Shown here one piece after another: positions 7,481-37,725 of a stretch of DNA of 64,000 bases. Position 1 is the stretch's first letter. Every line of letters starts with the position of its first letter. This DNA is from Bugula neritina (taxonomy: Eukaryota; Animalia; Bryozoa): assembly GCA_964035545.1 (NCBI GenBank), contig OZ037771.1, positions 3,297,628 to 3,361,627 of the forward strand. Direction: 5' to 3'. Below the pieces are notes generated by a model that was not told where the DNA came from, ran no database searches, and saw only the letters and a list, made by a program, of their open reading frames with translations. The position numbers and the translations under genes were made by a program.

Positions 7481-9031
7481 TTATTTAATGAATGGTCGTC
7501 TAGGAAATCTTATAAGGGAAGTCTTAGGTTTAAAGTATTTAACAAATAAAAATGCTGTCACTGCAACCAAGGAGCTGGCTAAGACTATCTTTCCCCAGCT
7601 GTAAGTAGTGCTGCTCTGTTGCTCGTTACACTGACTGCCATCTGCTGTCTGTTGGAACGTTTTTGTGTCTTCAAGGAGTTTAGTCAAGTCATAAGATGTC
7701 TTTTTCTCTTGTACTTCATTTTTCTTTGGTGACTTGAAATTTGTTATTTCCTTATCAAACTGAACTTTTCTTGAACTCTGTGGGTGAGGGTGTAGCTTAG
7801 TTGATCTCTCCGCTGCTTTTAGCTCTTCTGCAAAGTAAACAGATGCATGCAATAAATGTAAATATGGTTTAATTTCTACAATTCTCATTTATAGCGAGTT
7901 GACTGCACTATCAATCGAGTGTTGTAGGCGCTAATTCATAACTTTTTTCTATTCAAATGTTGCAACAGTCACCAACACAGAAATATGGACAACCAACCCC
8001 CCCCCCCCCCCAACAATATAACTTAATTTCACTTTACGTAGTCAAAGATAAGATTGTATTAAATTCCAATAATTAACTTGCCTAACAATATCACCAGCTC
8101 AAAAACACTACATGAGTATCTTATATTATGATTTTACTAGAAAGATTCTGAAAATTCTGACATGCTGGAATTATTATTATTAAGTCACAGCTAGAAGTTA
8201 TTTGCATGCAAATCTATATGTATGCTATGGGCAGTTCAATTTAACTAGCAGTCAAAAATCATAGTATATAATATTGCACGCAGGTGGAGTATTTAGACAT
8301 ACTAAAAAGTAGCATACCTTGTGTAAGATCCGTTTGTGAAGAGGATTTCACTAATTCATTATTAACATAAGTTAACCGACCATGCTGCAATAGATAAAGT
8401 TACACAGTCACGTGTCAATCTGAGACAATGTATGAGCCAATAGAAGGCTAGAAGCATGCAAAGTAGCTAACAGTTTTCCAGCTGGAAAAAGCTTCTTTGG
8501 CTAGCTGTGGGTAATTAATTTATTATACAAAGAGTCAGTTTGTATCAAATGCATGAAATGAAAAAAGCAAACTGTAAAAAATACGTAGAACACCTGCATG
8601 CTATGACTGGAAACTTTGCAATGGAAGAACCGATTGCTGTTACCGCAAAGCATGTGCAATAGTGCAATGTGCAAAGGTACAGAAATTTTCATAGCCCAAA
8701 TTCTTTAATATTTGTAATAAATTTTGGTTTAGAACGAAAAGAACATCACTTATTTTGCTACATTTCTAATCAAGAACACAGGCTTTTCTCAATTTCTCCA
8801 TTACCACACCTATAGCTTGTTTGTATGGTGCATAGATTTAGGTGTAGATTGTGTCAGTCTTACCACAGTATCAACTTCTCTCACCAACTTCTTACGGTCT
8901 GTTTTGCTGTAGTCGTATGACACCAGATGCTTTGCACCCTCATTGTACCATTCTTTAGACATGAAGTTATGCCCCGCCTCCTTATCTCCCTCACATCCTG
9001 TTGCTGGGGCGGAGTTTGTATGTTGAGCCAT
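7481..9031 (-). CDS. Uncharacterised ~193-aa protein with a C-terminal TM anchor and basic tail (tail-anchored)
   Basis: Three exons, 9031-8864, 8384-8318 and 7827-7481, join in frame (phases 0 and 1); C-terminus IVLASSLVAVTAFLFV-KYFKPKTSLIRFPRRPFIK. Confidence 0.7.
8691..8810. mobile_element. MITE, truncated copy (one intact TIR)
   Basis: Right TIR ggcttttctcaatttctccattaccacacc followed by TA; internal sequence similar to the copies at 18979 and 22014. Confidence 0.75.
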
Positions 9032-11596: not shown

Positions 11597-14500
11597 ATGG
11601 CTGAAACAGAATACAAAAATAAAGTTGATGGAATCTTAGCCAATGGATTTGCGTGCCTGGGAATTTCCATGGGTGAGTAGTCATGCTAGGCAGTATCGAT
11701 CTTGCCTCATACTGCAGACTGAATTTAGGTCAACATACAGCGCCAGTGCATGTTTTTATTCAAAGGATTGATGGGAAAGGCTGCATCTTAACTTTATTTA
11801 TTCAGATAAATTGATTTTCAATTAAAATGTTTCTCTTACATATACTTTTAATTTTTTGTTATATATATATATTTATATATGCAGTGTATAACATACTCTA
11901 CCTCTAGGAACGAGACTCGGCCTGTTTGAAGGCCTCTCCAAGTTGGCTCAGTCTCAAGAGACAGCAGTCAGCACACAGACACTGGCTGACAGCATGAACT
12001 TCAAAGAGAGGTGACTGTATAGTATATAATACATGTATATGCTATGACTACGATAGCAAACACTCCATCTACTCCCCCTCTTTCTAAATTTTCATGCACG
12101 TCTTCAGCATACTCGTATAATTATAGATATGCATCATAGATATGCGTAATATATCTAGAATCTAAATAATAGTTCTACGTAATATGTCTAGAATCTAGAT
12201 AATATGATAGTTCTACGTGATCGGACTCTAGAGCATTAGTTACAGATAATGGCATATACTTATAGATATACATGTATAATATATCTAGGGCATTAGTTAC
12301 AGATCATTGATGTGGTAAGGTGGCCTGATTATCTTAGCTATAAATAATATAAAGTGTGTCTTTGTGGTCTGCTCTACTTTTAAATGCTTCAGTGACAGTA
12401 GTATTTATTCATCTTCGTAAGCCTGTGAAGAACTAGGCTATGAAATTGACCTAGATATGCCTGGTGGAAGTCATGCCTGTCGCCTAGAATCTACTACACA
12501 TAGCTTAGCAGAAACTAGTTGATGTTACTGATAAGTTGAGTAACTGATTGCTTGCCCAGGTACATCAGAGAGTGGATAAATGGCATGGCGCTAGCTGGAA
12601 TCCTCAGTCATGAGGAGATAGATGGTGAGGACAGGTACTGGATTGAGCCTCACACCCTCCCTACTCTCCTCGGAGACGACACAACCTGGATTGCTCAGTC
12701 AGCAGAGTTACTCACTGGTGTGGCTGAAAAACAAGTTGCTGTAGAGAAATGTTTTCCAGTTGACGGGCCAAGAGGTACACTTCGCTGTTGTGATACTATT
12801 TAATTTAAGGATCCAAGACTATGCGACATATTTGGCAGAACTTTCTTTCATTAATTAGTATTCCCCGAACTTTCAAATTCCTGCATAATTTCAGTTAAAT
12901 CATTTTTACATGGCCACGTTAAATACAGCTACTTCATTCTGCACGCTCTAAATTTTTATGTTATGCATATAACATGACATTTCTGTAGCAAACAATGAAA
13001 CCAGCGTGTAAACCTGTTACTATGCAATCAAACCTGTGTTCTAAAGATAATTGTGAATTACTTCAATGAGTCTAAACTCAGTACCTAGATATAAGAATCA
13101 TCATAACTCAAATGTATACTTATGGAGTAGACTGTAGAGGTTAGAGCGCTGGTTAGTGAACGGCGACGTCAGTGGTTGATTCCTTGAACATCTGTGATGT
13201 TAGGAAAAGCATCCAGTCCTAATTATGTCACATATGAATAAGTGCTTAGCCCCTTAAAAACCGTTTCCATTAGGGGTTCTCACAGTCCACAGGGATATTA
13301 ACCATAAACTTGTGTAAGTTTATATAAGCCAATTATTTAGCTGCTGCTATTCAAATTATTGTAATCATTTTTAGTGTTTATTTTTGCTAATATCTTGACT
13401 AGTATGTCCACACTATAGCCTAATAATTCATCTCGCAGGTACAAATGTTGACGAATACCCGGTACTACATGAGTTTCTACTGAGAAGGTCCGTCATGTGG
13501 AAGTCACCAGGAATAATTCATAAAGTATTTGAAGATGAAGTCCTTCTATCTAAACTTGGTTAGTGATCGAATTTTATTAGCAAAAAAATTAGTCCTTTTT
13601 TATCGAAAGTGTTAGGTACGAGTACTTTACAAGATTGGTTTCATAAAGCAACAACGTGCTCTTTTATGGTAAATTATCCAACAGGTTCGCAGTTTTAAAT
13701 CGAATCTGACGTTTTAACGTTTGGTTTTTCGTTTGAAACTTTGGTATGATATTCTGACACTTTGGTATGATATTCTGACACTTTACTAAATTATGTGCTT
13801 TTGTAGAGAAAGGTATTAGCGTGGTAGAAGTAGGATGTGGTGCTGCCATACCAACAAAGACTCTTGCTACTCGGTATCCTCAGTGTAAGCTTCTTGCGAC
13901 AGACATATGCGCAGATAATCTGGAAAGAGCTAAGACTACCTGTCAAGGTAAGCGTTATAGTTTGTGCGACACTTGAGCTATCCATCTGCAGCTTGAGCAA
14001 TAATTCTGTTTGCTAGAAATTGATACTTATTAGTAGATCTAGTCTGCTTCATTGCAATCCATGTACTAGATTACAGTGAGATTATGGAACGAGAAATTTC
14101 ATAATATATTCTTGGAACCTTTATCCCTTATATATCATATATTACAGTAGTTCTTATGCAGTCAAACATACTCTACTCTAATCTTGAAAAGTTAGTACTG
14201 GTTCAAGAAATTTCTATTTTTAGTATTTTTGTGTATGATCAAGTCGACTGATTTTAAGCTGTAATAACTGGAAATGTCATATTACAATAATTTCATAACA
14301 TCTGTAGTTCAACATTTTTATAACCAAATTACTCATAATATCCTTTTAAATTTATCAAATTTTGTACAATATTTTGTATGATAATATTGCCAACCCGGAT
14401 AAAAAGTTACAAACTACATCAAGCCACTAATATTTCATTATTAGTGGCTTGAGGTAGTTAATGCTCATAATATTGTGTATTCCTATATTACGTATTATAA

Positions 14501-15239
14501 TTTCACTATTTTAGGACTGGAAAACGTTGAGCTAAGAGTGATGGATGCGTGCAATGCCTCACCAGACTTGAATGAAAAGTTTGACCTCGCGATGATGTTT
14601 GACGTTTATCACGACGTCCCATACCCTGATAAACTGATAGCCGGAATTCACCGTATCCTAAAGCCGGGAGGCATGTTACTGATGAATGACATCGGGGCTC
14701 ATGAGTCTATCACAGCGAACAAAGAAGAAAATGGTACACACAATTTCTTAAAACAACGCGCACAGCCAATATAGTTTTACCATTTTAAGATTACAGAAAG
14801 TCACTTTTGCAAGCTCTCCTACTCATAAGGTGTTGAAAGTGTGATAAGTTGACAATGATAACCTGGTATAAGAAGCTGCTAGTAAAAACCTACCTTTAGA
14901 CAATCGGTTTACCCCAAAATATGTTTTTTAAATTTGGCATTATATATAAGTTGCATATTATATCATCAGCTGTAGTGTATGTAGTATCTTAATGCAGGTA
15001 GTTATTTAAATCTATAGATAAGAGCAGTATTCTATGTGTTTTTTGTAGCCACCATGTTTGGCATGTACTACACAATTAGCTCACTGTACTGCATGCCTAC
15101 CTCCTACAAATACCCAGATGGTGCAGGTCTCGGTGCTTGTGGTGGCATGGAGCTGTATGAAAGGAAACTCAAAGACGTATTTACTGATGTTCGGAAAGTG
15201 GCTAAAGACGTAGGACTGTTTTTTCTCTGTACAAAATAA
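11597..15239 (+). CDS. Rv2258c-like SAM-dependent methyltransferase (N-terminal winged helix + class I MTase), paralogue A, 7 exons
   Basis: GTRLGLFE...KERYIREWINGM, CFPVDGP, YPVLHEF, VVEVGCGAA, FDVYHDVPYP, LKPGG and SLYCMPTS..GAGLG, colinear with the Rv2258c family as I recall it. Confidence 0.88.
13124..13318 (+). mobile_element. tRNA-derived SINE, diverged copy
   Basis: Alignable to 50179-50385 (gatgttaggaaaagcatccagtc...aaaaaccgtttccattagggg...cagggata). Confidence 0.7.
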
Positions 15240-15600
15240 TCAGTCACACCTACAACTTATCGGTCAGTTTATACAATCCATTGATAGTATATACAAGAAG
15301 ATAAGAAGCTGATTTGTTATAATTTGTTTTAGAATTAAAATACTAAACAAACTACAAAAATGTTGGAATAAATTTCTGTTCATCAATAAAAAACTAAAAA
15401 TTTTATTGCTGAAAAAATCAACTATCAAAACTAATAATCAATGATATAATCAAAATATTTCATCATTTGATCTTTAGAAAAATACTAAAGATTATTGCTA
15501 TTAATACATATCAGACTAGAAATACTGCTACAGCTATGCTCAACAATCAAAAGCTCCAATCTTGTAAATTAGCCTATTTTTAACTCAAACAGATTCAGGT

Positions 15601-18600
15601 TTATATTTTACAAACACCGTCATCACTTTTAGTCTTCTTTGTCTCTGGTTCAATTTCATGTATTTCTAGAGTTTTCGTAGCACAGAAAGTGAGGCCAATA
15701 ATTTCGTCACAACGTTTCACAATCTCACCCAGTCCGCTCTCTTTGAGCAGATCTTCAAAGACTTTAGGACCTGCACAGGGCCCCAACCCTGCTCCCCCGG
15801 GATGCTTCACAGATGTTGGCATGCAGTAGAGGGTTCCTATCATGTACATTATACAGCCCTGTGCACCTAAAATAGCATCACAATAACTTTATAGATTGTG
15901 ATTAACTCTATCACATCAGTAAGTGGTCTATCGACTTAAATTCAGAATAAAATAATGGTAAAGAACAGTAAATTGTAAATTAAAATTCTAAGCCACAGTC
16001 TTGAAGCTAACCAGAAACAAATATACAACAGTTGTTACGCATCAAACATTTACACAAAATCAGCACAGATGATATCAATGATCATATCAACCAATGACTG
16101 ATTTTTTAAATCAATATGATTATTCATCAAGACCACATAACTTTTTATTCTGGTTAGGAATGTATTATAACAAATAACTATTAATTATAGTCAGCGATTT
16201 TACCACATTTCACTTTGTTTTCTTCTACTGTGTCAAACATGTTGATCTCATTCATGATAAACCTCCCTCCTAGTTTGAGAAGTTTACAAGCTCCTTGCAA
16301 CAGCTTGATTGGATACGGCACGTCGTGAAAGACATCAAAGAGTATGACCAAGTCAAACTCGTCGGCCATACTGTCAGGTACATCACACGCATCCACTATT
16401 GCATAAGAGACGTTGGCTAAGTCTAAAATGCAGCAATAAACACAAGTAGCAACAGAGCTGAAACAGCATCAGACAAAATATACTTTTTGCAAGAATTTAA
16501 GGCATTTGTGAGAACTAGAAGCTTTAGACAACTGAATTTAACTGACCAATGACCTTGTATGATTCAAACAATGCTCCACCCACAACAACATGTCTCCGCC
16601 CACAATAATATGGCTGCTGCCAGTCACTGAAACCGCCATTCAATAATGTAGTGTCCATAAATCAAGGCAATAAAATCCCTAACTCTAATAGTTTAAACTC
16701 TAACACAGAATACCTTTACAGTTCTCTTTAGCTCTGGATAAAACACTTTCACTCATTTCAGACGCAACAAAAGAGCTGTTGGGGAATCTGGTAGCCATTG
16801 TTTTGACAGGATGTGCAGCTCCGCAGCCCAATTCAATGACCTTCGCACCTTTTTCTGGCAAAACATTCCCGATTCGAAATAAGAGAGGTTACAACACTTC
16901 TTTATCAGTGATACTGTATTAGGAAAATGAAGTATTTTGTCAAAGTAAAACAATTATGCTGGTACAAAAGACCAAATTCCCTTCACAAAAATTCAAGTTA
17001 AAACATGTGTCCACATAATTATATACTTGCACAAGTTTAATAGTAATAAATTTGAAATTTTAAACAATTCTTTAAACTGTCTAAATCACATCAGATAAAG
17101 CAGGAAATACAGACAAATATCTAAGTTACAAAGAAAGATATTTTAATATTTCATATTATCTCTAATGCTGCATTCAATGCACACTATTATTGAGCTTAAA
17201 CCAATATCTGATAGTGACAACATACCCAGTTTCTTAATGAGCTGTTCATCATTTAAAATGGCATCAATCTTATTCACATCTTGAAGAGGGCTGTACTTGG
17301 TGGCCAGAAACTCATGGAGCCCTGGATAATCATCTACTTCTGTACCTGTAACCAACACACTGTAGTTGTACCAGCTACTGTAACCAACACACTGTAGTTG
17401 TACCAGCTACTGTAACCAACACACTGTAGTTGTACCAGATACTGTAACCAACACTCTGTAGTTGTACCAGCTACTGTAACCAACACACTGTAGTTGTACC
17501 AGCTACTGTAACCAACACACTGTAGTTGTACCAGCTACTGTAACCAACACACTGTAGTTGTACCAGCTACTGTAACCAACACACTGTAGTTGTACCAGAT
17601 ACTGTAACCAACACTCTGTAGTTGTACCAGCTACTGTAACCAACACACTGTAGTTGTACCAGCTACTGTAACCAACACACTGTAGTTGTACCAGCTACTG
17701 TAACCAACACTCTGTAGTTGTACCAGCTACTGTAACCAACACATTCACTATTTTGCTGCACAACACACCTGGTGGTCCATCAATAGGAAAGCACGCCTCT
17801 ACATTTCTACTGTTTTGAGCGACTCCAGAAAGAAGCTGAGAGGACGAGGCGGGACAACCCTCCGCGGAGTGTGTAAGAGCTGGAAGACGAAATGGAGCTA
17901 ACCAGTACTTGTCTACCCCGTTCTCCACACAATGATCCACCATGTCCGCACACACCATTCCGTTTATCCACTCCCTGATGTATCTTGAAATTGCAATAAG
18001 AAAACTATGCTATACTGTAGGTGATTTTGGTTCATTATCACTATTATTTTGTTTATAATTAAACAAGTTCAACAAAAGAACTTTACAATTAATCACAGAT
18101 AAAACTAAACATAGGTAGCAAGTGAGTGAAAACAGAGTAAAGGCAACAGCACCTCTCCTTACACTTTGTATAATCTGCGATGACTTGTGTGGTTACTGCA
18201 GTCTCTTTAGACACAGAGAGAGATGCAATGGCATCAAATAGTTTTAGCCTAGTGCCTGCATGTACACAATACACTGTTACTCTAGATGCATATATAGAGT
18301 TATTTTACTTGCAATAGCAAAGATCGAAGAGTCTCCTTTAACCAAAAAACTAAACAAGTGGGATATGTTTGGATATTCTATTAAAACAAACCTACACCAG
18401 ATAGAAGTAACAAAGATAATTGAATGTTTACACAAATTAACCACAGGCATTTACTAAATCCTAAAGGCCATTCAATCAAGAGAGTTTTATGACAATGAAA
18501 CTGTGTTTTGTAGCTGATATATTTCAGAATCATCTGCCCTTGAAAAAAGAATGTGAAACATGACAGTAAACAATTTATCCCAAAACGCATTATTTTTAAA

Positions 18601-18861
18601 AGAAAATATATTTGCATGAAACAGAAAACATGGTATGGGTTGAACCAAAGATAACACCAGCATGTAATATTTTCACAGCAAAACATTTACTCTATTTATA
18701 ATAACAATGCAAGCTGTTTTCAGTAATGCGATATATCAACAAATAGAACAGCATCAGCCATTTATTGCAGCATTATAATACAGACCTAATGAAATACCAG
18801 CAGCTATGAATCCCTTCATTATAGCATCTTGGACCTTCTGGGAAAAGTCACTTGAAGACAT
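15601..18861 (-). CDS. Rv2258c-like SAM-dependent methyltransferase, paralogue B, 7 exons
   Basis: Starts MSSSDFSQKVQDAIMKGFIAAGISLG; motifs GTRLKLFD, KERYIREWINGM, VIELGCGAA, FDVFHDVPYP and TLYCMPTS..GAGLG; intron positions match paralogue A. Confidence 0.88.
17346..17742. repeat. 32-bp minisatellite, 12.4 copies, filling most of an intron
   Basis: Unit ctgtaaccaacacactgtagttgtaccagcta; the terminal copy supplies the real acceptor (GTTACAG|G on the minus strand). Confidence 0.95.
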
Positions 18862-18978
18862 ATTCCTAAAGAATCTTTGTTATTAGAGAACTGTAATTAC
18901 AATTAACGTAGCATATCAAATAAGATAATGAAACGAAACCTGGATTTCAAATCTGGAGCTGTGGAATGGCGTCATTTA

Positions 18979-19136
18979 GGAGCAGTAGTGGAGAAATTGA
19001 GATAGCCTAAGCTATTTGATTTTATTATTAAATTTCGGTTTAGGACGCGGGTTAAAATTTTCGCGAGAACATAACTTCTTATGCTACATTACTACGCTAG
19101 AACACAGGCTTTTTTAAATTTCTCCATTCCTGCACC
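18979..19136. mobile_element. MITE with ~30-bp TIRs and flanking TA
   Basis: ggagcagtagtggagaaattgagatagcct ... aggcttttttaaatttctccattcctgcacc, with TA on both sides. Confidence 0.85.
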
Positions 19137-22013
19137 TACCTACCTAACTGCTACCACTAGCTTTGAACCTTAGCTTAGCTTGTTCACTGCCTGATGCATT
19201 TATGAGTCACTTTCAGTAATTTACTAAAAAGCCTCGAACTTTCAATTAAATATAACTAATAACTATAGTCTATAAGGATATTATAATTATGGTAAATTAA
19301 TAATATTAAATATATTATTTAATAGTACTAGAACTAACACTAAGTAATACTAGAAGTAATATTAATACAGATTACAGATACTAATAGTAATTCACTAATA
19401 GTGATACTATAACTAAGTCTAATAGTAACTGCAATGTCCAAGGACACTTCGACTATGACTGACAGTCACACTCACTTTAAGTGACTGCGATAATTATAAT
19501 CTTACTTTGTTTTATTGATTATAAAATTAAATAACAGTCGAGTTAATTTTACCACTTATCTGTTATCACTATCACGGTGACACTGACTATTACATCCACA
19601 ATCACTGCTTCACCGAAACTATCACTATCAGTATTACTATGACTTTACCTGGTCTAGTCTATAACCTAAGCTTATACTCAACTTATAGCTAACAAATAAA
19701 CAAGTTTTATTTAATTTTATAACTATAATACCAAATAATAATATAAAGTTCTACAAGATTACAACTTGGGTACAACTATTATTATAACTATAAGTATAAG
19801 TATAACTATAACTATAAGTATAAGATTAAGTATAAGCCTAAGGCTAAGCATCGGACTAACTTTAAGAGTTAGAGTAAAAGTAAGACTAACAGTAACTGCA
19901 AGACTAACAGTAATACAATTACTCACTAATAGTAATACTAACTCAGTAACTGTAAGATTTATTACAATTAAACAATCAATATTATCATTATGATTATCAT
20001 TATATGATTATAAGATTAGGTGTAATTCTATTTTTTACTTTTTCTTTTAGTTTTAGTTCACAGTTAGACTTGCTTCAAGTTTAAAGTAATGGAGTTAAAA
20101 GTCTCATCTCTAAGAAAAACACAATAAACCTGATTAAATTTCAACAGGCTTTAATTACTATTCTATAGCAGTAGAGTCCAATTCCACCATGATTATTTAA
20201 TAAGCACAACCTTAAACTTTTAAGACTAAGTGAAAGTTTGCAGGAAACTCCCAGCAGCATTCACCGGAAACTTCGAAACCGCAAGTTTGGCAGGTTGCTC
20301 ATCTAGCATTATTTTTATCATGACTGCCAATAATATCAATATTATTAAAATATCAGTAATGCGTCATAAATTTTAAAAATAATTGAAGCATATCAGCAGT
20401 AGCAATGTCATAATTTAAATTACAAATAATTATTTTAAGCGCCCTATCAACTCGTAGAGCAAACGAACACAAAAAGGAGACAACTCTACAAAGATAGCCT
20501 GCTAGTGAGTGATGAACTGATATAGATGTTAAAAAATCAAGCAGCAACACTTGCACTCTCTGTGGTGTGCTCAAAATCACCAGTTAAATAAATTACTTTA
20601 TTCTTATTTAGCACAATGGTCCACTTTCGTAATCATATCTTATTGCAACCGATAATCAATTCATTCAAAGCTGTTGAGCAAATTAAGCTCTATAGTCTCC
20701 AGAGTACTATAGTAGGCCTGCAATGTTGCTGTAGCCAAAAGTATAGAACTTACCTGCTACATTATTATACCTGAATGCAGTTTCTTTTAAGCCATCAGAA
20801 AAAAATTACCAGTGCCACAGCTATTTGAGACTAGTTGATACATATTATTTATTCCAATTATAAGATATATTCCCAATAAAAGTAAGGAATCAGCCTGAAG
20901 CAACTCACAATCCTGCTGCCATAGACACTTGTTATTCATCACTAAAACACCTAAACCTTTGCACAATGGCACAGCGACAGGTGCAAGGATGTAACTCTTG
21001 TGAGTTTTAAGTGGTCATTTATATGATGCCTTAAGGAAAGTGTGGGCTGGTTCACAGTTGTAAAACAGGCTCTCAATATAATATTCTTCAGGAAGTAATT
21101 ACTGTTGATCATATGCAACCAAAAGTGCACTAGAATTTAGAGTATTATACCAACACTACATCATTATTCCAGTAGGCTATGCTATCACCTAAGTTGTAGC
21201 ACATTGCCAGGTCATAATGTAGGCTTGTATTGCAGTTGACAATGACACATTACAGACCATAATAGAAGCTTGAATTACCTACTTTATTACAAATTGGCGT
21301 ATTACAGCATTGCATTTTAACATTCATATAGGCTGCAAGAACTGTGTCAATAAGCCATGGGATGCATAGGATGCATAAGCCATACAATGCAGGTATATCA
21401 TTGCCCCCTCTCTAGTGTCTGTGTTGTCTTATAAATCTCTCAAACCGGAAATGCTGCAACATTCCTTGGCTTTGACATTATGTGAAGAATGGATGCTCTA
21501 AGGGATGAATTTGTGGTAGCCGTTAGCAAGAACTCATGGTTATGGTTTCATTTATGCAACTGTTACCAAACATCAAAAGAAAAATTCAGTTGAAGTTTGG
21601 ATACGAAGTTTCCTTATCAGGTGCTATACCTGCAACCATCATTCAAAACCTCATCTTCTGTTTACAGTGGCATGTATTTTACTGACAGAATATCTCCTCA
21701 ATGCTGCTAACTAAATCACTGCCCCACGCCTCAGATGTTTTACATTTAATAGCTGCTATATTACATTCATGACTTACAAACACAGCAACTGTTGTATCAC
21801 AATATAAAAGCTGTACACGGTATCTCATGTTGGCAAATCTGCCACCTATGTCATTACATAATATACCATAACATTCTTCAAGCTCTGCACTAGCCTGCCC
21901 ATTATATTAAGATTGCCACTTCTGTATCCAGAATCTTGTATTATTTACAATTTACATAGTTAGATTTTGAGAAATATCATGATCAAGTTACTGCATCAAG
22001 TAACTTGCCATTA

Positions 22014-22649: not shown

Positions 22650-23294
22650 CTAGGAGGTGACCAGCAGCTAGTAATCGAATAACTTTCTATTTAAGAAACA
22701 CATGCACGGCTCTTAATAAATAACAACTTTGACTACTGCAAGTTCTCATTATTTCTGCCTAATGAGAGAGTTGTGTTAGAACTTAGAAGCATGCTTTCGT
22801 CTCCTACCAACATTTCAGGCAAAGTTTTATCTTTTTCAAAGTAAAAAGCACTTTGTTTTTAACCAAAGAAAAATGAAACTTGCGTGTTAAGAGAAATTTA
22901 TAGCAACTGCAGCGCAAATATTTTGTATATTTTATTTTTTTATATCGATTGTCATATGATCTTTTGATATATTATCAGAGCTTCACCACTGCAGTTGTTT
23001 TCAGAAATATTTACAAAAAATATTCCATTTACTCCAAACGCACTTTGCCAAGAAATGCTCGTATAATACGAGAATATACTTCTACAATCTAAAATACTCT
23101 TGTCAATATAACAGCATGTGACACACATTTGAAGTATACATTATAAAGTTTTCTGCAATAAAAGTTGGAGCCAATTTTTCTAGATAACGTGTAGAATCGA
23201 TGGTTACCATAAACAAATTAAAATATATTTGAGTGATAATTAGATTGTAGCACCAAAATAACAATAGCAAAACTAAAATTAAAGATGAAAAGAA

Positions 23295-23624: not shown

Positions 23625-25111
23625 CTGCAATGTACACAACTAAAGAGTTCATATCAAATGGTGTTTCATCTACATATTGTCCTGGTATATTTCAAAGTTA
23701 TGAGCTGATTATGAGCCAATCAAAATTTGAGGAAATTTTAGAGGAATCGGCACAGGATTATTGAGCAATTAAAATTCTATACTCTGAAGACCAAATAAAT
23801 GCATAACCAATGCTCTATAGTCTCAATGCTTTAGATGTAGCCTCAGTTCTGAATTGATATGGTCAAGCGATTACAAGAAATAAAGACTTTTACAAGAGCA
23901 AAAACATGCAACGTAATTTTGATGTCCAAATTATTATAACACTTGAAAACGGCCCCAACTTTTTTGCAGAAAACTTACACATTTCAATATCAACATACCT
24001 GCTACAGTTTTGAAGCGGTATTATTTGAGATGCCAATTGATCTGTTTTCTACAAATACCCCAAACTTGACATTTGAAGAAAGTGATTGCACACTGCGAAG
24101 TCAGTTTTGGTCAGAACTTAATATGAAGTATGTATCTCGTGCCCCCCACCCTCACTTTAGTGCCAGCTTCTTTCTAACAAGTGTGGATATTTCTAGACAG
24201 AATAGGGGGAAATTATTACTATATTCAATACTGACATGCTTTTTTCGAGAACTTGTTCTATGTAAAAAAATTAGGATATATGACCAAGAGTTATACCTAT
24301 ACATTATTTTTAAGCCTGATACTAAATTTTTTGTATCAGAATATATTACGTGTGTTTGTGTGTGTGCTTAAAAATCTTGTGATTTAAAATTTTTTTAAAC
24401 CAGCTGTTCTTGCTCACAAAATTGAAATTCATCAAACCGGCTATACATTTTTCTATTATTTGTAACCTTGTTTTTATTGAAAACTGTTTGGGTAGGATTT
24501 AGGAAAAACTGGTGCAATTGAAAGTCAAGCATAGTTTTGCATGTATGTATTGCTCCTGTTCAACACGATCAATCTTAAATTAGTTGTATTCGGCTCAATA
24601 GATTGCATATATTACAGGCGCAAGGAGCAGAAAAGGAGACAAGCATAGCACTTGCTATTAATAGAGGCAACAGGGTTGGGAAAATATTGTTGTTGTCTAA
24701 CAGTAAAATTTTACAAATACTTGCTAGATATGAAGGGCAACTCTGTTAGGAGGTAGGATGATGGTTATTGTGAGGTATGTGCAAGTTCTTCTCATTAGGT
24801 TGTAAAATCATTACAGATACTTCTAATATAAGAACTTTCCAGCTCATGCTGAAGCTAATGTTATAGCTATCAAGTAAACTAATGTGAATGGATGAATCTT
24901 TAGTGGGAAGACTAAGATATGTTTATATGACCGAATACTGTTTCATACTTTCATAAACTACATAAAATATACATAACATGTATGTAAAATGTTAAAAAAT
25001 GTTGGAAGCATTTTAGCATAAAAAATTGTATCATTTAATATTTACAGGTCTGTTTTTAGGAACACAATTCTCACCAGAAATCATAGGTCTATCAGATGCG
25101 CAAGTATGAAC

Positions 25112-29574: not shown

Positions 29575-29741
29575 CTAAAAAAACGAAATTATCTTTACAG
29601 ATTGAGAATAGAAGCCAAGAATCACATGTATCACATAAAAATATATTGACCCGAGACCATTAAATAAAAATTCAAACAAAGTTATGATGTACAAAATAGT
29701 GGTACCTAAGAAAATTCAAGAGCTGTAATACCATAACACTA

Positions 29742-30532
29742 CTAGGTGACCATATGCACATCTGGCATACCAGATTTTTCTTGTTCTAGACGACGAACAC
29801 GTTTCCAAAAGTATTCAAGCCAGCCTAAAATTATATTAAACACTAAAAGCAGTTGGTCTTTATTGCAGCAGACATGATATTATCTTGGAAATTTAGAACC
29901 ATATTATTATATTGTAAACATTACAGCCATGTCTGACCAAACTCACCATTTGAAGCTTTAAAAGTGTGATAGCCCAACTGTTGTGCGACTTCTTTTGCTT
30001 TAGTTTGAATTCCAACTCCTGTTGGAGTTTTCCCGGACGCTTTAAATGCCCAGTACCAATCAAGTATAGCAGCATTAATTTCAGCGTATGCATTTGATTT
30101 TAAAAGTCTCTGTTTTTTAGTGATGAAAGGATTGGAAAACCTAAACCATTCAGCCATTATTTTGTGCTTATTCTGGACAATGTTAGTTATTGTAAATTTG
30201 CTTTGACCATACTGTAGGCACAGAGCTTTTATTGATACACCACTGTCGTGAAGCTGGCAGCATTGAAACTTTTGTTCTAATGATAGTACTGTTGAAGATG
30301 GCTTGGTGTATGTATCTTTCATTTTCAGAGATGACATAACTCTTGATTGTTCAAGTGTAGTGGCACTCATAGAATCACCAACTTTAGATTTCAAAGCAAT
30401 GTCCTGATTAGAAGACGAATCAGCTGATTTCATGCCAAACCAATTGATGGAGTTATCTTCATTCATAGTTCTTTCATGATGTAGTAAACCATCGCCATGT
30501 GTGCTCAAAGGTGACTCATGCGAATTAAAGCT
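29742..30532 (-). CDS. Variable cassette 4 (two exons, 30532-29947 and 29824-29742): CENP-B/pogo-type psq HTH + Tc5 HTH DNA-binding domain
   Basis: Phase-0 acceptor cactgtag|AGC; LSLEQK..HDSGVSIKALCLQYGQSKFTITNIVQNK; splicing restores FKASNG|WLEYFWKR; no DDE domain follows. Confidence 0.85.
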
Positions 30533-30683
30533 CTACAGTGAATTAGTATGCCAGGTTGTTTATATAGAACTAATTTCGATATGCCCACTATAGAGGCTGT
30601 TTTGATGCCAAGAAAATAGGGAGGGGTGCTTTGTGATACATGTGATTCACAATAATCTAGTTAACACTGTTTTATAATTTCAC

Positions 30684-30716
30684 CACCTGTCTATAAAGAC
30701 CAAAACTGATTTCGCA
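30684..30716 (-). promoter_or_regulatory. Putative intronic RNA docking site
   Basis: Plus-strand CACCTGTCTATAAAGACCAAAACTGATTTCGCA; partial reverse complements at 29850, 28945, 28040, 27519, 26969, 25897 and 24094. Confidence 0.75.
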
Positions 30717-31132
30717 TTTTATGTTAAATGAAAACATGAAGGTTAGATTGATATTGAAAATTATATGAACTTGACTACCCATAGATTTACAATCGTTTGT
30801 AAATCTATAAGTTAAAAAACAGCTCGTAATTATTTGAAATATACAAGGATAATTCATTGCCATACCATGGCTTTAAAATAAAAATGTAACCAAGTCATAG
30901 ATAGTTCGCATAGTTTATACCACATCCAGCGTCATTTGCAATGTTGTGCCGGACATATAACTACATTTCTTAATAAAAAAAACACGCTACATTTTCAAAG
31001 CGACCGCAGAGTAATTGGCAAATTTATTATTTACAATTTTATTACAAAAAAAGATGTGAAAGTACATTAAAATATTTATTACAAAAATGAGGACTAGAAA
31101 ATCTGAAAAGCCATCCAAAAAGGCAATTGAAA

Positions 31133-31498
31133 TCAAAATACATAACTCTTCTTTTGCTTCCCAATTAAAAGTGGCCATAGCAATTGAAACCACCGAAGAT
31201 GAGATTTACTAGTGAAAGAAGCATCCAGCTCAGATCCACTTTGCGATTTCACTGCTCGGTTTACAATTCGAAGACAGTACTTAAACTTGTTACGTATTCT
31301 GTCCAGGCATTGGTGAGGACTATGTGGATGCTTGAGTAAGAATTCTTTAAGAACAGATTCATATGTTTGAGTAGTTCCAGTATAGTTTACTTCTGTTATA
31401 AGTTTCTTTCGATAAGCCTCATTAGATGTTATGATTGAGACCAAATCATTGACTTCTTCTAGCGACCAAGAAAGCTTTTGACATAGCTCCATATCAAT
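31133..31498 (-). CDS. Variable terminal exon 3: MADF/Myb-SANT-like (trihelix) domain
   Basis: Acceptor aattctag|ATT, phase 0; WSLEEVNDLV...YESV...RIRNKFKY...RWFQLL. Confidence 0.75.
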   Translation of the reverse strand: MDMELCQKLSWSLEEVNDLVSIITSNEAYRKKLITEVNYTGTTQTYESVLKEFLLKHPHSPHQCLDRIRNKFKYCLRIVNRAVKSQSGSELDASFTSKSHLRWFQLLWPLLIGKQKKSYVF

Positions 31499-32485
31499 CT
31501 AGAATTTCATGTAGATGGTTTATAAACGCATATCACCAAGCAACAGATTATGAGCTTACCATACAAAATCTCAGTAAAACAAAAAACATGTTCATTACGA
31601 GTTAGTTAGCTTGAAATACAAATTTGAACAAGTTTGAAAAACCATTATCAAACTCTATGCAACATAGGACAAAAAGCACAGTTGAGTGGACAGACAACTG
31701 CCTAACAGTGAACCTTTTCACAAATATTTTTATATTCAAAAATTTGTGCTTTACTGTTTGACTAAGTTGCAGTCAGCATATACATAGACAATGGATGCAT
31801 AAGCACAGTAATAGCTATAAACAAGTAATATAGTCTGGAAAACATGGCATAGAAAAAGTTTGGAGCACTTTGGCACACATGCTGATACAAATTATAAAAG
31901 TTTCAATTGAAAATTTTACCAAATTCCTAAATTCGATTGACAAGACTATGGCTAAAAATCTACTTACTTTGTGTACCAAATCTTGAGCATATCCCAGCAC
32001 AGTTCTTGAATGGTTAAGCACCATTTCATGGAAGTCCAAGTATTTGTAGACTATGCAGTATATACAGTATAGCTTTGCCATCGCGAAATTCATTTTGGGC
32101 GAAAACGACTAGGGTGTGGTATAAACTATGCTCGTTAAACAGTTGTCTGCCCATTAACAGACTGCTGCCCAGCCTTTGAGCTCTAAGTATTGCCAAAACA
32201 AACTATAGTTAGCATAGTTACTATAGCTGAAAATAGTACTGGCATTCCAATATTCAAAAATACTTTACACAATGGGGGACATTGTCTAGAGCATAGCTCA
32301 GAAGTAATGCCTACACTGCAGAAAATGAAGAGAGAGCAAGCATAAGAAATTGGGTAGTAAGAAATTATTTGTGGTAATATTGTTCTGGTGATCTTAATTT
32401 CTGGTAAACTTGAAGTCAACCATTTAATACTACATTCAGGTTTATTAGGTGAAAAATATGTAAAAAGTTCATTTTATAAAAAAAA

Positions 32486-32794
32486 CTACTGTAAACATCG
32501 AACACAAAACTCATTTAAGTCATCATGTAGACGGAATAAGATTTGTCCTTTTTGACCTTTTCGTATGGTACCGAAACCTGCACCAGTCATGCAGAGTAAA
32601 AACTGTAATGATCTGTTTCTTTTATGTTTCCCTTGACCATCCCGAGGACAGAACTTTCCCACGGTGAGGTCTCTTAGAGTCAATTCTCTACCCATATTTT
32701 CTAAACTTCTTGCTTTGTTCACAATTCGCTTCACGTGGGCTTTATACTTGCCAAATAAATCATCTTTTAGAAAATCTCCAAAATCTTCATTAAC
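32486..32794 (-). CDS. Variable terminal exon 2: winged-helix-like domain, subfamily A
   Basis: Acceptor tttcttag|GTT, phase 0; KDDLFGKYKAHVKRIV...FLLCMTGAGFG. Confidence 0.78.
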   Translation of the reverse strand, partial: VNEDFGDFLKDDLFGKYKAHVKRIVNKARSLENMGRELTLRDLTVGKFCPRDGQGKHKRNRSLQFLLCMTGAGFGTIRKGQKGQILFRLHDDLNEFCVRCLQ

Positions 32795-35036
32795 CTAAGA
32801 AAATGTGCAACTTGAATATAGTCAGAAACATCAATTTCATAATGAAACATGGATAAACTTGACTTCTGGATACAAGCCTACTATTGGTATAACTTAAACG
32901 AATCAGGCGACGTATTAGTTTTATAACTTATAACTTACACTAAACATGCAACAGTACTATTACCATGGCTTACATTGAGAGCAGATTGAATATTCACTAT
33001 CTAATTGCACAACATTATTGAGTCAAGGTAGAGTCATGAAAGCATAAAGATCAACTTCCAATCAATCCAAAATTATATTACTAAAAACTTTTGGCACAAA
33101 CATTTACCATTATTGTACAACAAGCAGGGAACAATAAATCATCTGCCCAATTATTTCACCCAGAACAAATTCAAATGTTGACTTTTCATAACAAAAACAT
33201 TCTTTTCATATGCTAATTAATTGACTGATGGATGATAAATTTTACTGTATCAATTAAAATTTACAATGTTTCTAGGTTAAATCAAAATCACTCTACAATT
33301 GATATTACAACAACTACACCACTTTAAAACTGCCTTTGGAAATTGCATTGCAAAGAGTTGCCAACACAAGGAAAGCATGTCACCATCTGAAATAGACTTT
33401 TATCACAGTGAAATATTAAAGGGTATATGCCCCCCCCCCCCCCCCCCCGTAAAATTGCTGACAGTTTGAAGAAAGCTATCAGTGGTCTCAACTTTCTATT
33501 TATTAATAAAAATTGAGATTCCTACATGGATTAGAGTATTGACTTGACGCTCAACAACTTTGCATTGTTCTCGAGGAAAGGTTAGCAAGTTTTCGCCAAC
33601 AGCTAGAGTAATTGTTGGGCACCAGAACGTATTACATGAGAAGCAATAATACATTGCATAGAGGAACACAACTCCTTAGGCAAGCAGGCAGTTTCACAAA
33701 TTCATCCGAATTGAACAAACATTTTCAGTTATAGACTTTAAAGCTGCTGATAAGATGCATATAGTAAGTGCCTATCTACCCTATCTAATACATAAGTTGC
33801 CCATCCTATTCCAAGTGACAGATTCTTACAGAAGCCATCAATTACAATATTTAAAGTAATTTAATATAATGTATACACACAGCTGTACATAAACAAATAG
33901 ACCCACACAAATAAAACCACAACTAATCAACAGTGTAATCATACATACAGCCATTACCATTCATATTTTCCTTACCTGATCCAACAGCAGCCACCAGCTT
34001 TGAGTATTCCAAGTTTTTCCACCAGTTATCACATTTCCTCAATATTTTTTGCAGTCAACCCACGGTTTCACTAGCAACTAGTGTTTATTAGCAGCAACAA
34101 CTTCAGTGTTTCCAAATATGTCACAGACTCTGCTTGAGATCATTTACTTTGAAATGTTCATATTGCAGGTACAAATAATAACACTATTGAAATACACAAG
34201 TAAAAATAGCATCTTGTAAATTGATGAGTAATATGAAAAAACATCCACTAGCAATAAGACGAAAAGCCACAAAACCTTAGGGGAACTTCACTACTACTAC
34301 TAACAGAAATCTCAATCTTATCACAAACATAAAAAAATGCTATATAAAAATCATGAATAAGAATTTGTCCACTCTTTAATACACTGAGCAGTAGTTCATC
34401 CCCACAGCAGTTAGCAGGTGAACGTATAAGAAGTTGAGACCACCGATTTCCTATGTTATGCTGTCTAGGTTACTTGAGTGTTAAGTGAAGGCAGTTATAT
34501 TGCCCACGCAGTGAAGAAGATGGCATTTAGAGACAGTTTAGATGCAGTATGAGGAGACATTGCACAGTGAAAACGCGAGAGTATATCCTGGGTAACACCG
34601 AAGTGGTACTCTATGAATATTGGAATGCCAACACAGCATTTTCACACTAACAGTGAAGTGGCCAGCAGCACTGGTGGTAGAAGAACTAGAAAGTCAAAGC
34701 ACTTTCTCATTTTTTAATTGAGAAAACTTCCTCAATTTGAAGAAGTGAAAATGAGTTTCTAGTACTTTTAACCACAAACTGCAGAAATCACACTGACTTG
34801 CTAGAGATGATGAGCTACGAATATGTATATTATATATTTTTAGAGCGAACAATCAAAACAAATAAATATATTAAATTTGATTTCAGGTTTCAATGGAAAA
34901 ATATTAAAAATCTGTGAGTCGGTATAAGTTTATACAATGTTTTGATTGGCGGTCATTAAATTATCAACTTCATATTACAAATCATGATATAAAAACCAGT
35001 CTGCCTGATTGACGACATAAGTGGCTAGCTAAGCGG

Positions 35037-35330
35037 TTACCCTATATCCTTCGAGTTAGTGAGTGTTTTTATGGTAGGTTTTGACCATACTCGGGTGGAC
35101 ACGATGGTAACACCGTGCTGACGCTTCAAGTGATTTATCATGTTACTTGTATTACCACCAGTGGACTTAATAACTTGTCTACAAGCTCTACAGACTGTAA
35201 AATCTCTGGAATTCTCCACAGACCCTTCTGCCAAAGTTTCAAAATATTTCCAAACCTCACTTCTAAAAGGGCGCGGAACTGTTTTATGCAGCTGAGTTGC
35301 TGGATTGGTGAGGTTACAAGAGTTCCGACT
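35037..35330 (-). CDS. Variable terminal exon 1: BED zinc finger
   Basis: Acceptor cttttcag|AGT, phase 0; RSEVWKYF...CRAC..VIKSTGGNTSNMINHLKRQH. Confidence 0.88.
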   Translation of the reverse strand, partial: SRNSCNLTNPATQLHKTVPRPFRSEVWKYFETLAEGSVENSRDFTVCRACRQVIKSTGGNTSNMINHLKRQHGVTIVSTRVWSKPTIKTLTNSKDIG

Positions 35331-35671
35331 CTGAAAAGACCAGATTCACGCGTCAACGAGCTGAGAAAGCAAATTCTCTTCACATCGGCTCATAACCTTC
35401 CTTGCAGGACTAAACACAGAACTCGTGCTTCCACATTGGTCGGGTATGCAAATTAACCTTCATTTGAGTAGCGAAAAGAAACACCACAAGTTTTTGTTGT
35501 CTTTTTTTTAGAAAAAAGGGGAATAAGGAATCTGAGGCCTCTCGAAGTCAGTGTGATTTGATAAGCATTGCAATGTGTAGCAACTTGAACCTTCAGAAAA
35601 TGCTCAGCCAGTTGGTGAACGTTCAAATTGTCACACGTTCCAATTTAAGAAAGAATGACATAAACACAAAC

Positions 35672-37725
35672 CTTTTGGCTAGACTGGCTAGGAGTAGGTT
35701 GAGAGTGGAACTGTGGACGATATATATGCTGATTGGGAGTCATACTGGGATAAGTCGACGAGATTGGCCCTGTGGGTATCTTTATTCCTGACAGCGGGCC
35801 CATAACAAAGTCTGGCCGTGACGGTGTTTCCTTTTTATACATGTGCTGCGGTGTGGAGGTGGTGGGAAGCGGGTTGATTGATTGTGAGGGTGTCATGGTT
35901 TGACTGTTGAATATGTTCATCATGGAGTCGATACTGGGGTCAGAGGGAGGAAAAACTACATCTACAAATGAAAGCATAAAAAGTGTATCAATTGTATGCA
36001 GCTTGGCTAAGGTTTACGATGAGCAAAGGTGTTAGCAATCATACATTAAAGAAACAGTAACATCAAAAGCTGTTGGGGAGCATCGTAAATAATTCTAAGA
36101 ATTAGAAAAACCTGGCGAAAGCAATGGAAGACCTACTAACCGGGCAATACATTCATATCCAGTTCTTTGTTGCGACTTGCACCATCTTGTTCCCCGACTT
36201 CCACCTTGATCTCTAGAATATCTGGGTCAAACTCGAATGGCTGTTGTTCAGTTGGGTCGTCCGAAGGTCGTTGTTCTGATTCCGAGTCTCGTTCCGTCTC
36301 AGGTTCATCCTACAGCAGAATGTAAGAGAAATACAGAAATTGGACGTTGTTTGGTTGTATGCAGTACCGACAGCCACATGAAGAAGTAAAGTGCTTGCGG
36401 TAACTCACCTTATTGGGTACATCTTCAAAGTCGAGTCCAGAGGGAGTTTCCGAGTCCTTATCAACAACAGGGGGGATATCAATGTAGCCCGGGCTGGCCA
36501 TCTCAGAGTCAAACTCCAAGCTAGCCGGCTCCATCGACACTATGTTAGAGTCCGCAGGATTGGTCTAATAAACAGGAAGTAAAAGAAGACTAACCAGACA
36601 TGTCTTACTAGACTCTAGAAAGAAAGACATGATGAAATGGCAAAGTTAAAAAATAGAACACAGCAGATAGAAATATTTATGATATCACATCATATGACTC
36701 ATGGTAATTATTTTTTGAAAACCAACTTTTGTTTCAACAGATTACTAGTCGAAAACTAAAGTAATGAGAGTCAAGGGTTTTAATTTAGTGCTAAACATGT
36801 CTGAAACAACAACATACAGCAGTCGATGTCATTATACAAAGGCGATGTGCTTACAGTGAGTGTAGGCATGCTGGAGGTAGCCACAGGTGTGGAAGTATTG
36901 TTTGATGAGGCTTGACTAGATGTTGGATTGCTGAGAGAAAAACCCGCCTTTAAGGGGGGCGGCACAGGAGGCGCCGAGAGTAGCACAGCCGACTGTGAGT
37001 CTGGATCTGAATCTACAAAGGAAAGACATGTATTTAAATCTGATAGGCTTTAAACTCCAAGAAAATGTTCACCTGGGAACACATACAGGTTAGCAGATAA
37101 TGGTGAGCACTTGACAGTACCTTCATTACGTGGGTGAGTGGTGCTAGAAACCCGTTTCGGTGCATTGACTTTACGCTTCTTGGTGTGAGATCTGAAATCT
37201 TGAGACATTATGCAGATGTGTTTGTGGTGCTCCATCTCGTGTGAGTAGAAGGCTTTATACTGACACTTATCACACTCAAAGTACCAGCTGAGTTTCTGAA
37301 TATAGCCGTCATGTGGCAGAGTCATGTCAGTGTGTTTGTGTCCATTAGGGTGCATCGACTCGACTATCTGTTGAAGAATATGACGCAGGGCTATCGAGAG
37401 GTTATGCTCTCCTGCAGTGTGCTACAAAAGAGGTAAAATGACAGTCGAAGAAAGGTATGTAGAGGCATGCTGATTAGATGAACTATAATTTCATTTCATT
37501 TCTACCAGAAACGTAAGCAAAACACATGTAATTATTACTACAATAACTTGTACTAGTTTTAAATACAGATGTGTGGGCTTGCATAAAACTAACAGAGAAC
37601 ATTATCGCATTGTTTTCATATTCAATAAAAAAAAATACATGAATTCTATCAAGTAACCAGAAGCTACTATAAAATATCACACCAGTTTTTATAGACATAC
37701 AAAAGGAAAAACTTACCACAACCAT
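35672..37725 (-). CDS. Common N-terminal exons (361 aa) of a putative multi-isoform transcription factor
   Basis: Exons 37725-37717, 37421-37121, 37012-36855, 36564-36409, 36309-36141 and 35961-35672 join in frame. They encode one zinc-finger-like motif (FECDKCQY..HHKHIC), a KKRK NLS-like motif, an IKVE SUMO consensus and an S/P/acidic disordered region, and end at the phase-0 donor AAG|GTTTGT. Confidence 0.8.

Follow-up and report, generated by a model that had tools for sequence, protein, structure and literature searches.

Serial long-range helices upstream of a docking site as a putative means of skipping alternative last exons in a bryozoan gene

Introduction

The locus control region (LCR) of Dscam1 exon 6 is, as we understand it, made up of tandem intronic stem-loops, which enhance the use of a cluster of internal exons (Wang et al. 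2012, PMC3535345; Dong et al. 2026, PMC12962786). The balancer pairings of Dscam1 repress proximal and promote distal exons and counter a first-come-first-served choice (Dong et al. 2022, PMC8791459). In Drosophila, competing docking-selector pairings operate in the 3' variable regions of the genes PGRP-LC, CG42235 and Pip (Pan et al. 2018, PMC6191721). Exon loop-outs are found in human GPR126 and FGFR1OP2 (a terminal exon) and in Drosophila Nmnat, where a flanking complementary pair lowers inclusion (PMC8052449).

Loci of the lola, Pip and PGRP-LC type pose the unsolved question of how one donor can pass a number of complete terminal exons that all carry an acceptor and a poly(A) signal. Here, we have analyzed a stretch of 64,000 nucleotides (the window) from a bryozoan of the Bugula neritina group that contains such a gene. 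In our literature search, which had incomplete coverage, neither this locus nor control of this kind in bryozoans was described.

Results

One donor and about 13 alternative last exons

The host gene gives rise to a minus-strand pre-mRNA with about 13 alternative last exons, which swap the DNA-binding tail of the protein across a final intron of roughly 13 kb (Table 1). The first-pass annotation had proposed a single donor serving alternative terminal cassettes, and this gene model is borne out by the RNA junctions: in transcript contigs, the donor at 35672 leads to six different last exons (cassettes 2, 3, 4, 7, 10 and 11), with junctions to 32794, 31498 and 30532 and loose ends that additionally link it with 27992, 26382 and 25447. 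Such contigs cannot place 3' ends, and their depth was not taken as a ranking of the isoforms. Alternative use was thus seen for cassettes 2, 3, 4 and the farther exons, while the BED isoform junction was absent among the RNA joints from four runs. No BTB domain was matched in the first coding exon or the last constant exon, which gave a weak zinc-finger-like signal only.

The AATAAA signals of cassette 2 (32446) and cassette 3 (31080, 31043 and 31028) are located inside the S2 and S3 loops, 100–190 nt ahead of the respective 3' arms, and are therefore transcribed before the stem can close. After the BED stop, the S1 loop contains no canonical AATAAA, only a TATAAA at 34934; the first ATTAAA past the stop, at 34718, is outside the loop. 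That the stems hide poly(A) sites, as the first-pass annotation proposed, is therefore doubtful for the BED cassette. The docking site displays 88–97% identity in five other species and is predicted to form duplexes with several mutually exclusive partners.

Table 1. Positions of exons, helix arms and the docking site in the window.
Feature	Position	Strand	Remarks
Last constant exon	35672..35961	-	phase-0 donor after 35672, common to all cassettes; RNA joints, loose ends, sequence
S1 5' arm	35545..35559	-	112 nt past donor
Cassette 1, BED zinc finger, 97 aa	35037..35330	-	Pfam zf-BED E=2.5e-11; predicted splicing
S1 3' arm	34785..34799	-	15 bp with 35545-35559
S2 5' arm	34614..34634	-	17 bp, all Watson-Crick, extended by 4 bp (2 G-U)
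Helix N 5' arm, nested in S2 loop	34431..34447	-	17 bp, -31.9 kcal/mol; in whole-region MFE
Helix N 3' arm	33478..33494	-	takes out 0.94 kb between S1 and cassette-2 acceptor
Cassette 2, winged-helix-like orphan domain, 102 aa	32486..32794	-	RNA joint to 35672
S2 3' arm	32236..32256	-	17-bp core 32240-32256 with 34614-34630; invariant in second Bugula type
Helix X 5' arm	32133..32153	-	21 bp, 4 G-U, -37.1 kcal/mol; abuts S3 5' arm
S3 5' arm	32115..32131	-	17 bp; invariant in second Bugula type
Helix X 3' arm	31687..31707	-	189 nt ahead of Myb acceptor; crosses S3
Cassette 3, Myb/SANT-like, 121 aa	31133..31498	-	RNA joint; Pfam Myb_DNA-bind_4 E=0.017 (below cut-off)
S3 3' arm	30908..30924	-	17 bp with 32115-32131; invariant in second Bugula type
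Docking site, end of relay	30682..30716	-	pairs with selectors ahead of distal cassettes (predicted duplexes)
S4 5' arm, fourth skip stem	30632..30648	-	sequence pairing
Cassette 4, CENP-B/Tc5 HTH, first exon	29939..30532	-	RNA joint in three runs; Pfam
Cassette 4, second exon	29824-29742	-	predicted from conservation
S4 3' arm	29619..29635	-	45 nt ahead of cassette-5 acceptor; compensatory changes in six species
Stem Y 5' arm (fifth skip stem; loop contains cassette 12)	23950..23976	-	sequence pairing
Stem Y 3' arm	23146..23173	-	upstream of cassette 13

Three stems in series

The three inverted pairs described in the first-pass annotation are exact reverse complements and are indeed arranged in series, with linkers of 112, 154, 108 and 191 nt. 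Their spans range from 0.7 to 2.4 kb, and each surrounds a whole coding terminal exon, as had been claimed, with one in-frame terminal ORF per loop: a BED finger, a winged-helix-like domain and a Myb/SANT-like domain. The suggested extension of S2 likewise holds, with 21 uninterrupted base pairs on the minus strand (2 G-U) followed by a TGAAAAT/ATTTTCA helix. On the transcribed strand, exons are thus flanked by complementary arms to a degree not expected by chance, and every arm of S1–S3 has one strong partner rather than the multiple partners of a docking-selector system.

Perfect pairs of this class were found to be far rarer in shuffled sequences and genomic controls, as the earlier reading presupposed. 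Three pairs were observed in 5.2 kb compared to a mean of 0.014 in 1000 dinucleotide shuffles, which never contained two. Twenty genomic controls of 10 kb contained about nine independent events by our own count, or about 0.23 per 5.2 kb, from which the probability of three or more pairs in 5.2 kb is about 0.002. The window has five such pairs in total, every one of them within the exon cluster. A chance origin of S1–S3 is ruled out by the shuffles and the genomic controls.

The 17-mers of S2 and S3 have exactly two copies each in 216 Mb, corresponding to their own two arms, and the 15-mer of S1 has six, of which four are scattered singles. The S1–S3 region is single-copy in the genome, and no target-site duplication (TSD) longer than 2 nt was identified beside any of the three stems. 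Transposon TIRs with TSDs, one of the findings that the first-pass annotation had named as refuting its reading, are rejected on these grounds.

Conservation and recurrence in other species

The comparison with the second Bugula type covered three arms, the 3' arm of S2 and the two arms of S3. None of the 51 core positions in the three arms differ, as compared to 247 of 1643 (15%) in the neighboring intron, and only 15% of 17-nt windows are invariant, giving about 0.004 for the three arms together. This indicates that the compared arms are under selection and more conserved than their flanks. Changes in or next to the arms preserve or lengthen the pairing: in the second Bugula type, S3 grows to 20 bp through a change at 30925, and pairing is kept by G-U to A-U changes in X and Y and by A-U to G-U changes in L047/L048.

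Orthologues of the BED and Myb cassettes were not found in other species and are absent from L046, L047 and species 3 in tblastn/phmmer searches; two metagenome scans provided nothing useful, and an exact look-up of the proximal ORFs had no match. The other species have no arms orthologous to those of S1–S3, for which the observed changes are single and pairing-consistent.

A related species, species 3 (L055 and L013), has its own two-stem relay from the donor to the conserved docking site, with arms unrelated to S1–S3 and different contents in the loops. Stem A begins 24 nt past the donor, and its loop contains a cassette with a winged-helix-like domain; stem B begins 77 nt after stem A and stops about 53 nt ahead of the dock. 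Each was recovered in 0 of 60 shuffles, and the species 3 relay is independent of the S1–S3 chain. The 1.3 kb enclosed by stem B contain no recognizable cassette, open frame or homology, which implies that bridging may matter as much as hiding. Two further species, L046 and L047, carry the same proximal multi-exon cassette inside dock-adjacent double stems of unrelated sequence, with a 0.85-kb linker left unbridged in L046, and tandem local hairpins are present between donor and dock in L046 and L015. Overall, tandem stems leading from the constant exon to the dock are present in the window, species 3, L046 and L047, but are not evident in L025, where no strong proximal stem was found within 1.65 kb.

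Folding models and additional helices

The proposed folding into stems is partly reproduced. In local models, S1 forms with P=0.999, and X with P=0.999 before the 3' arm of S3 exists, after which S3 forms with P=0.997. S1 and S3 are missing from the MFE structure of the whole region, in which X and the BED-exon helix Z were preferred to S3 and S1, by margins of only about 5 kcal/mol. Closure of all three stems would leave about 0.57 kb from the donor to the docking site.

All three inverted pairs are real, but the set was incomplete: S4 and Y bring the number of putative skip stems to five, and S3 has a crossing competitor, helix X, which is conserved and probably favors the Myb exon. The 5' arm of X could alternatively form a local hairpin. 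The changes in S4 are double-sided in six species. Cassette 13 is without a good selector, and cassettes 2, 3, 4, 5 and 13 each come after the 3' arm of a skip stem. The loop of helix N was considered for a hidden cassette (34140-33974), with no open frame or homology there. G-U pairs show a modest strand bias (19 versus 10), which is not uniform.

Discussion

We consider it reasonably probable that serial long-range helices loop out the nearest exons one by one and thereby give access to the farther ones. The proposal builds on observed sequences, uniqueness, junctions, arm invariance and recurrence of the layout, and on modeled folding; pairing in vivo, its effect on exon choice and the order of events are what we infer from these sequences. 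The distal exons would be selected through the old, conserved docking-selector pairing. Such pairing cannot skip exons located between the donor and the dock, and hence an exon gained there would be provided with a separate stem that loops it out. If a stem is not closed before its exon has been spliced and cleaved, that exon would terminate the mRNA; if it is closed, the exon would be looped out and the donor carried to the next unit. With S1, S2 and S3 all closed, linker hairpins might bring the donor even closer to the dock than estimated above. For the Myb exon, the crossing helix X would form first and pull the acceptor near, and S3 may displace X once its 3' arm has been transcribed. More tentatively, and with considerable doubt, we can imagine a modular, evolvable chain in which each newly captured upstream terminal exon gains its own skip stem, the change from X to S3, for one unit at least, works as a co-transcriptional attenuator that switches from inclusion to skipping as the polymerase moves past the poly(A) signal, elongation rate or helicases set the hierarchy among the transcription-factor isoforms, and the stems possibly clamp the cleaved RNA.

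Several other explanations can be thought of. The stems might be a constitutive bridge resembling the Dscam LCR, nearly always formed and carrying the donor to the dock, with the proximal exons as passengers inserted into the loops and chosen by splice-site strength, proteins or early cleavage. The cassette-free stem B in species 3 and the tandem hairpins in L046 and L015 fit this explanation, as does the LCR itself, whose tandem stems upstream of the dock are divergent in sequence and conserved in architecture (PMC3535345). We nevertheless find it unlikely: each stem in the window brackets exactly one cassette, as do S4 and Y on the 3' side of the dock where no bridge from the donor is needed, cassettes 2 and 3 are spliced in vivo, and X crosses S3. 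It is less likely still that the stems clamp the transcript against premature cleavage, such that cleavage occurs at the poly(A) sites in the loops and the cut halves are held together for splicing to a farther exon. This is a published hypothesis (PMC8052449; PMC10227441) that is compatible with serial skip stems, and the signals of cassettes 2 and 3 do precede stem closure. The S1 loop, however, has no canonical poly(A) signal. Moreover, cleavage normally commits the polymerase to termination, and yet 9 kb more must be transcribed.

We regard two further scenarios as very improbable. The cassettes encode transposase-type DNA-binding domains and inverted pairs in the control stretches frequently look repeat-derived, so that the arms could be DNA-level relics with no RNA role, either old transposon TIRs (BED from a hAT-like and HTH from a pogo-like element) or inversion footprints. 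This idea is largely refuted by arms that are unique, without TSDs and more conserved than their flanks, by G-U extensions in S2, X and stem B of L013 that pair only on the transcribed strand, and by the recurrence of the layout with different sequences in species 3. Alternatively, the cassettes may have transcripts of their own, which the pairings would bring to a second RNA for trans-splicing, as in mod(mdg4), where the gene logic is similar; trans-splicing in chelicerate sDscam is reportedly assisted by RNA pairing. But all cassettes are colinear on one strand, the stems nest and run in series as intramolecular folding requires, and contigs cover intron sequence across most of the region.

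Serial skip stems, the explanation that we favor, would make this locus a compact and testable answer to how a donor passes complete terminal exons, with short unique arms, one stem per exon and a predicted outcome for each. The species comparison suggests that, while exons are gained and lost around a dock that does not change, the RNA architecture is built anew out of different sequence, and such rebuilt architecture would escape screens for sequence conservation.

The gene shares a common N-terminus and many alternative DNA-binding C-termini with mod(mdg4) and lola, but is colinear, whereas mod(mdg4) trans-splices. The loop-outs in GPR126, FGFR1OP2 and Nmnat are single events and not a chain feeding a docking-selector array. 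With PGRP-LC, CG42235 and Pip it has in common the terminal cassettes on one donor and a docking-selector choice coupled to 3'-end formation; those genes belong to another phylum and protein class, and the sections consulted describe no chain of skip stems, each with its single exon, before the dock (PMC6191721). S1–S3 resemble the balancers in being a second set of long-range pairings beside the docking-selector system, and would likewise hold back proximal exons in favor of distal ones. The balancers, however, lie within the cluster from its first variable exon onward and pair one upstream element with several partners, whereas S1–S3 precede the dock, have a single partner for each arm and would act in series. 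As in the Dscam1 LCR, tandem intronic stems are located upstream of the dock, with the architecture kept and the sequence diverged between lineages. The LCR stems are, as we understand them, enhancer subunits whose loops are without alternative exons, whereas the stems here each enclose a coding terminal exon that can itself be chosen and is spliced (by prediction for BED). The serial skip stems ahead of the dock would be a variant of the known control of splicing by RNA structure, as represented by the Dscam LCR and balancers and by PGRP-LC and Pip.

Results

Gene organization and terminal cassettes

The gene, which is single-copy in the genome (216 Mb, 321 contigs searched), lies on the minus strand directly 3' of an ADAR gene. 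Its constant exons terminate at a phase-0 donor after 35672, and about 13 in-frame terminal ORFs (cassettes, or alternative last exons) follow between 35330 and 22200. They encode a BED finger, a Myb/SANT-like domain, a CENP-B/Tc5 helix-turn-helix (HTH), a winged-helix-like orphan domain that is present in nine copies and was seen at no other locus, and one further orphan; searches with the spliced protein covered it one exon at a time. Weak matches to the winged-helix-like domain were seen at the C-terminus of uncharacterised Uloborus (spider) and Nematostella (sea anemone) proteins (P0031, P0034).

In four probable RNA runs, contigs connect 35672 to 32794, 31498 and 30532, and their loose ends fit 27992, 26382 and 25447; the BED junction is absent from these contigs, which lose rare forms. 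The loose ends place the cassette-11 acceptor at 25447 rather than 25462, and cassette 12 probably uses the equivalent 23624. Cassette 10 (26382) is spliced in vivo, yet no skip stem precedes it and it lacks a clear selector. A second exon of the CENP-B cassette is predicted at 29824-29742, extending the HTH in phase 1, and is conserved in other species. In one run, 666 nt of the region before cassette 2 (33460-32794) are swapped for 63 nt.

Elsewhere in the window, several methyltransferase-like gene copies on both strands (12500-18300) produce long inverted matches. The ADAR gene contains a long imperfect inverted repeat (46131-46226/50256-50348) with arms about 4 kb apart, whose duplex of -139 kcal/mol on the transcribed strand is a candidate for self-editing or splicing.

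Stems around the cassettes

The first-pass annotation had described three perfect inverted pairs arranged in series, each looping out one proximal cassette. All three are exact, and the linkers between donor and docking site ("dock") are indeed short (112, 154, 108 and 191 nt). Three such pairs compare with 0.014 per region in shuffles and about 0.23 per 5.2 kb in genomic control stretches, and the 64-kb window holds five pairs of this type, all inside the exon cluster. The possibility that the arms are transposon ends was ruled out, since the genome has no further copy of the S2 or S3 arms, the region is single-copy and no target-site duplications were found around the stems; the S1 15-mer has four extra scattered single copies. 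The count of three proved incomplete, as a scan that allowed G-U pairs on the transcribed strand added two more cassette-enclosing stems, S4 and Y, together with further helices.

Paired elements and docking site of the exon cluster
Feature	Position	Strand	Description
S1	34785-34799/35545-35559		15 bp; around cassette 1 (BED)
N	34447-34431/33494-33478	minus	nested within S2 loop
S2	32240-32256/34614-34630		17 bp; around cassette 2 (winged-helix-like)
X	32153-32133/31707-31687	minus	21 bp, 4 G-U
S3	30908-30924/32115-32131		17 bp; around cassette 3 (Myb)
Dock	30716-30682		docking site
S4	30648-30632/29635-29619	minus	encloses CENP-B cassette
Y	23976-23950/23173-23146	minus	encloses cassette 12

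The 3' arm of a skip stem precedes each of cassettes 2, 3, 4, 5 and 13. The dock pairs well with selectors (dock-complementary elements) preceding cassettes 6, 7, 8, 9, 11 and 12 and with one within the intron of cassette 4, and weakly before cassettes 10 and 13. The selector-like match in the intron of cassette 4, the CENP-B cassette (29880-29852), crosses S4 and may offer a second route to cassette 5. Inside helix N, an exon-like segment (34140-33974) with a strong donor (GTAAGG) and no open frame may be a decayed exon that is held in a loop.

Helix X has its 5' arm adjoining that of S3 and its 3' arm 189 nt ahead of the Myb acceptor. Because it crosses S3, the two must be alternatives or form a strained pseudoknot. 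S1 likewise has a crossing helix, the weaker Z, which joins the BED exon to the linker that separates S1 from S2. S1 and S3 were present in the MFE and centroid structures of local windows, whereas the 5.1-kb MFE chose X and Z over them. With the transcript ended at 31000, X had a probability of 0.999; once the S3 3' arm was added, S3 reached 0.997 and X fell to 0.002. With margins of about 5 kcal/mol in models that exclude pseudoknots, these results show near-balanced predicted alternatives rather than in vivo states. For cassettes 2 and 3, AATAAA signals fall within the respective loop, 100-190 nt ahead of the 3' arm; the S1 loop sequence contains no canonical poly(A) signal.

Conservation within and beyond Bugula

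In a second Bugula type (L020, L023), 15% of proximal non-coding positions differ. The arm comparison, made for the 3' arm of S2 and both arms of S3, found 0 of 51 core positions changed; with clustering taken into account (15% of 17-nt windows show no change), the chance of such invariance is about 0.004. The second type does differ directly outside the S3 3' arm, where a change at 30925 extends S3 to 20 bp, and X and Y each show one G-U to A-U change. It also lacks 45 nt of the Myb 3' UTR (31085-31129).

Six orthologous loci were recovered, which we take, from protein identities of 40-80%, to be separate bryozoan species. The dock is 88-97% identical in all five loci that cover it, and S4 occurs in five of the six other species as well as in the window; its alignment has one break and, at several columns, double-sided changes. 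Neither the BED nor the Myb cassette was found in the other species, and the cassette-2 orthologue sits far distal in one of them, so that the proximal cassettes of the window appear to have arrived recently, upstream of a dock that is old.

The comparison that matters most is the third species, whose overlapping contigs L055 and L013 span the stretch between donor and dock. There, stem A (18 bp) starts 24 nt past the donor and has a winged-helix-like cassette in its loop. Stem B (22 bp, 3 G-U) starts 77 nt after stem A and stops about 53 nt short of the conserved dock region; no recognisable exon was found in its loop. Closing both would shorten about 3.4 kb to about 0.15 kb. Each was matched in 0 of 60 shuffles, and their arms have no sequence in common with S1-S3. 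In L046 and L047, a shared multi-exon proximal cassette sits inside a double stem that stops 17-25 nt short of the dock, and here too the arms are of unrelated sequence; the L046 inner helix by itself was matched in 4 of 60 shuffles, and L046 retains a 0.85-kb linker. No strong stem was found within the 1.65 kb available from L025. The multi-exon cassette of these two species (L046 5700-6520, L047 400-1245), conserved between L046 and L047 at 57-62% identity and giving no Pfam hit, is absent from the window, and L046 carries at least 14 winged-helix-like cassettes past the dock (7900-20347), together with several dock-complementary selectors.

Discussion

The stems are real and selected and probably functional. 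We favor a chain of skip stems as the most likely reading, with reasonable though not high confidence. Docking-selector pairing can skip only exons downstream of the dock, and the upstream exons thus need loop-outs of their own. Each of these exons would be looped out by its own stem, and the same stems would carry the donor to the dock. Exon choice would then depend, at each exon, on whether splicing and cleavage outpace the closing of its stem, with X tilting the outcome towards the Myb exon. Among the other species, the loop of stem B, the long linker and shuffle-matched inner helix of L046 and the L025 result count against this reading.

The leading alternative is a bridge of the Dscam LCR type that would form almost constitutively, a reading favored by stem B of the third species, which encloses no recognisable exon; we consider it rather unlikely. 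Less likely than either are a clamp that rescues cleaved RNA, which we regard as improbable, and, at the far end of the scale, DNA relics and trans-splicing, both of which appear very improbable.

Every single ingredient of the skip-stem chain has precedent. Stems arranged in tandem upstream of a dock (PMC3535345) and balancer pairings that favor distal exons (PMC8791459) have been described, competing pairings are known in 3' variable regions (PMC6191721), and looped-out exons, one terminal exon among them, show lower inclusion (PMC8052449). In the literature covered, into which few subscription papers fell, we found no description of the present locus and no report of one-to-one serial loop-outs of entire terminal exons feeding a docking-selector array. 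The stems are as such neither a Dscam LCR nor a docking-selector system, and instead work like the known exon loop-outs and balancers.
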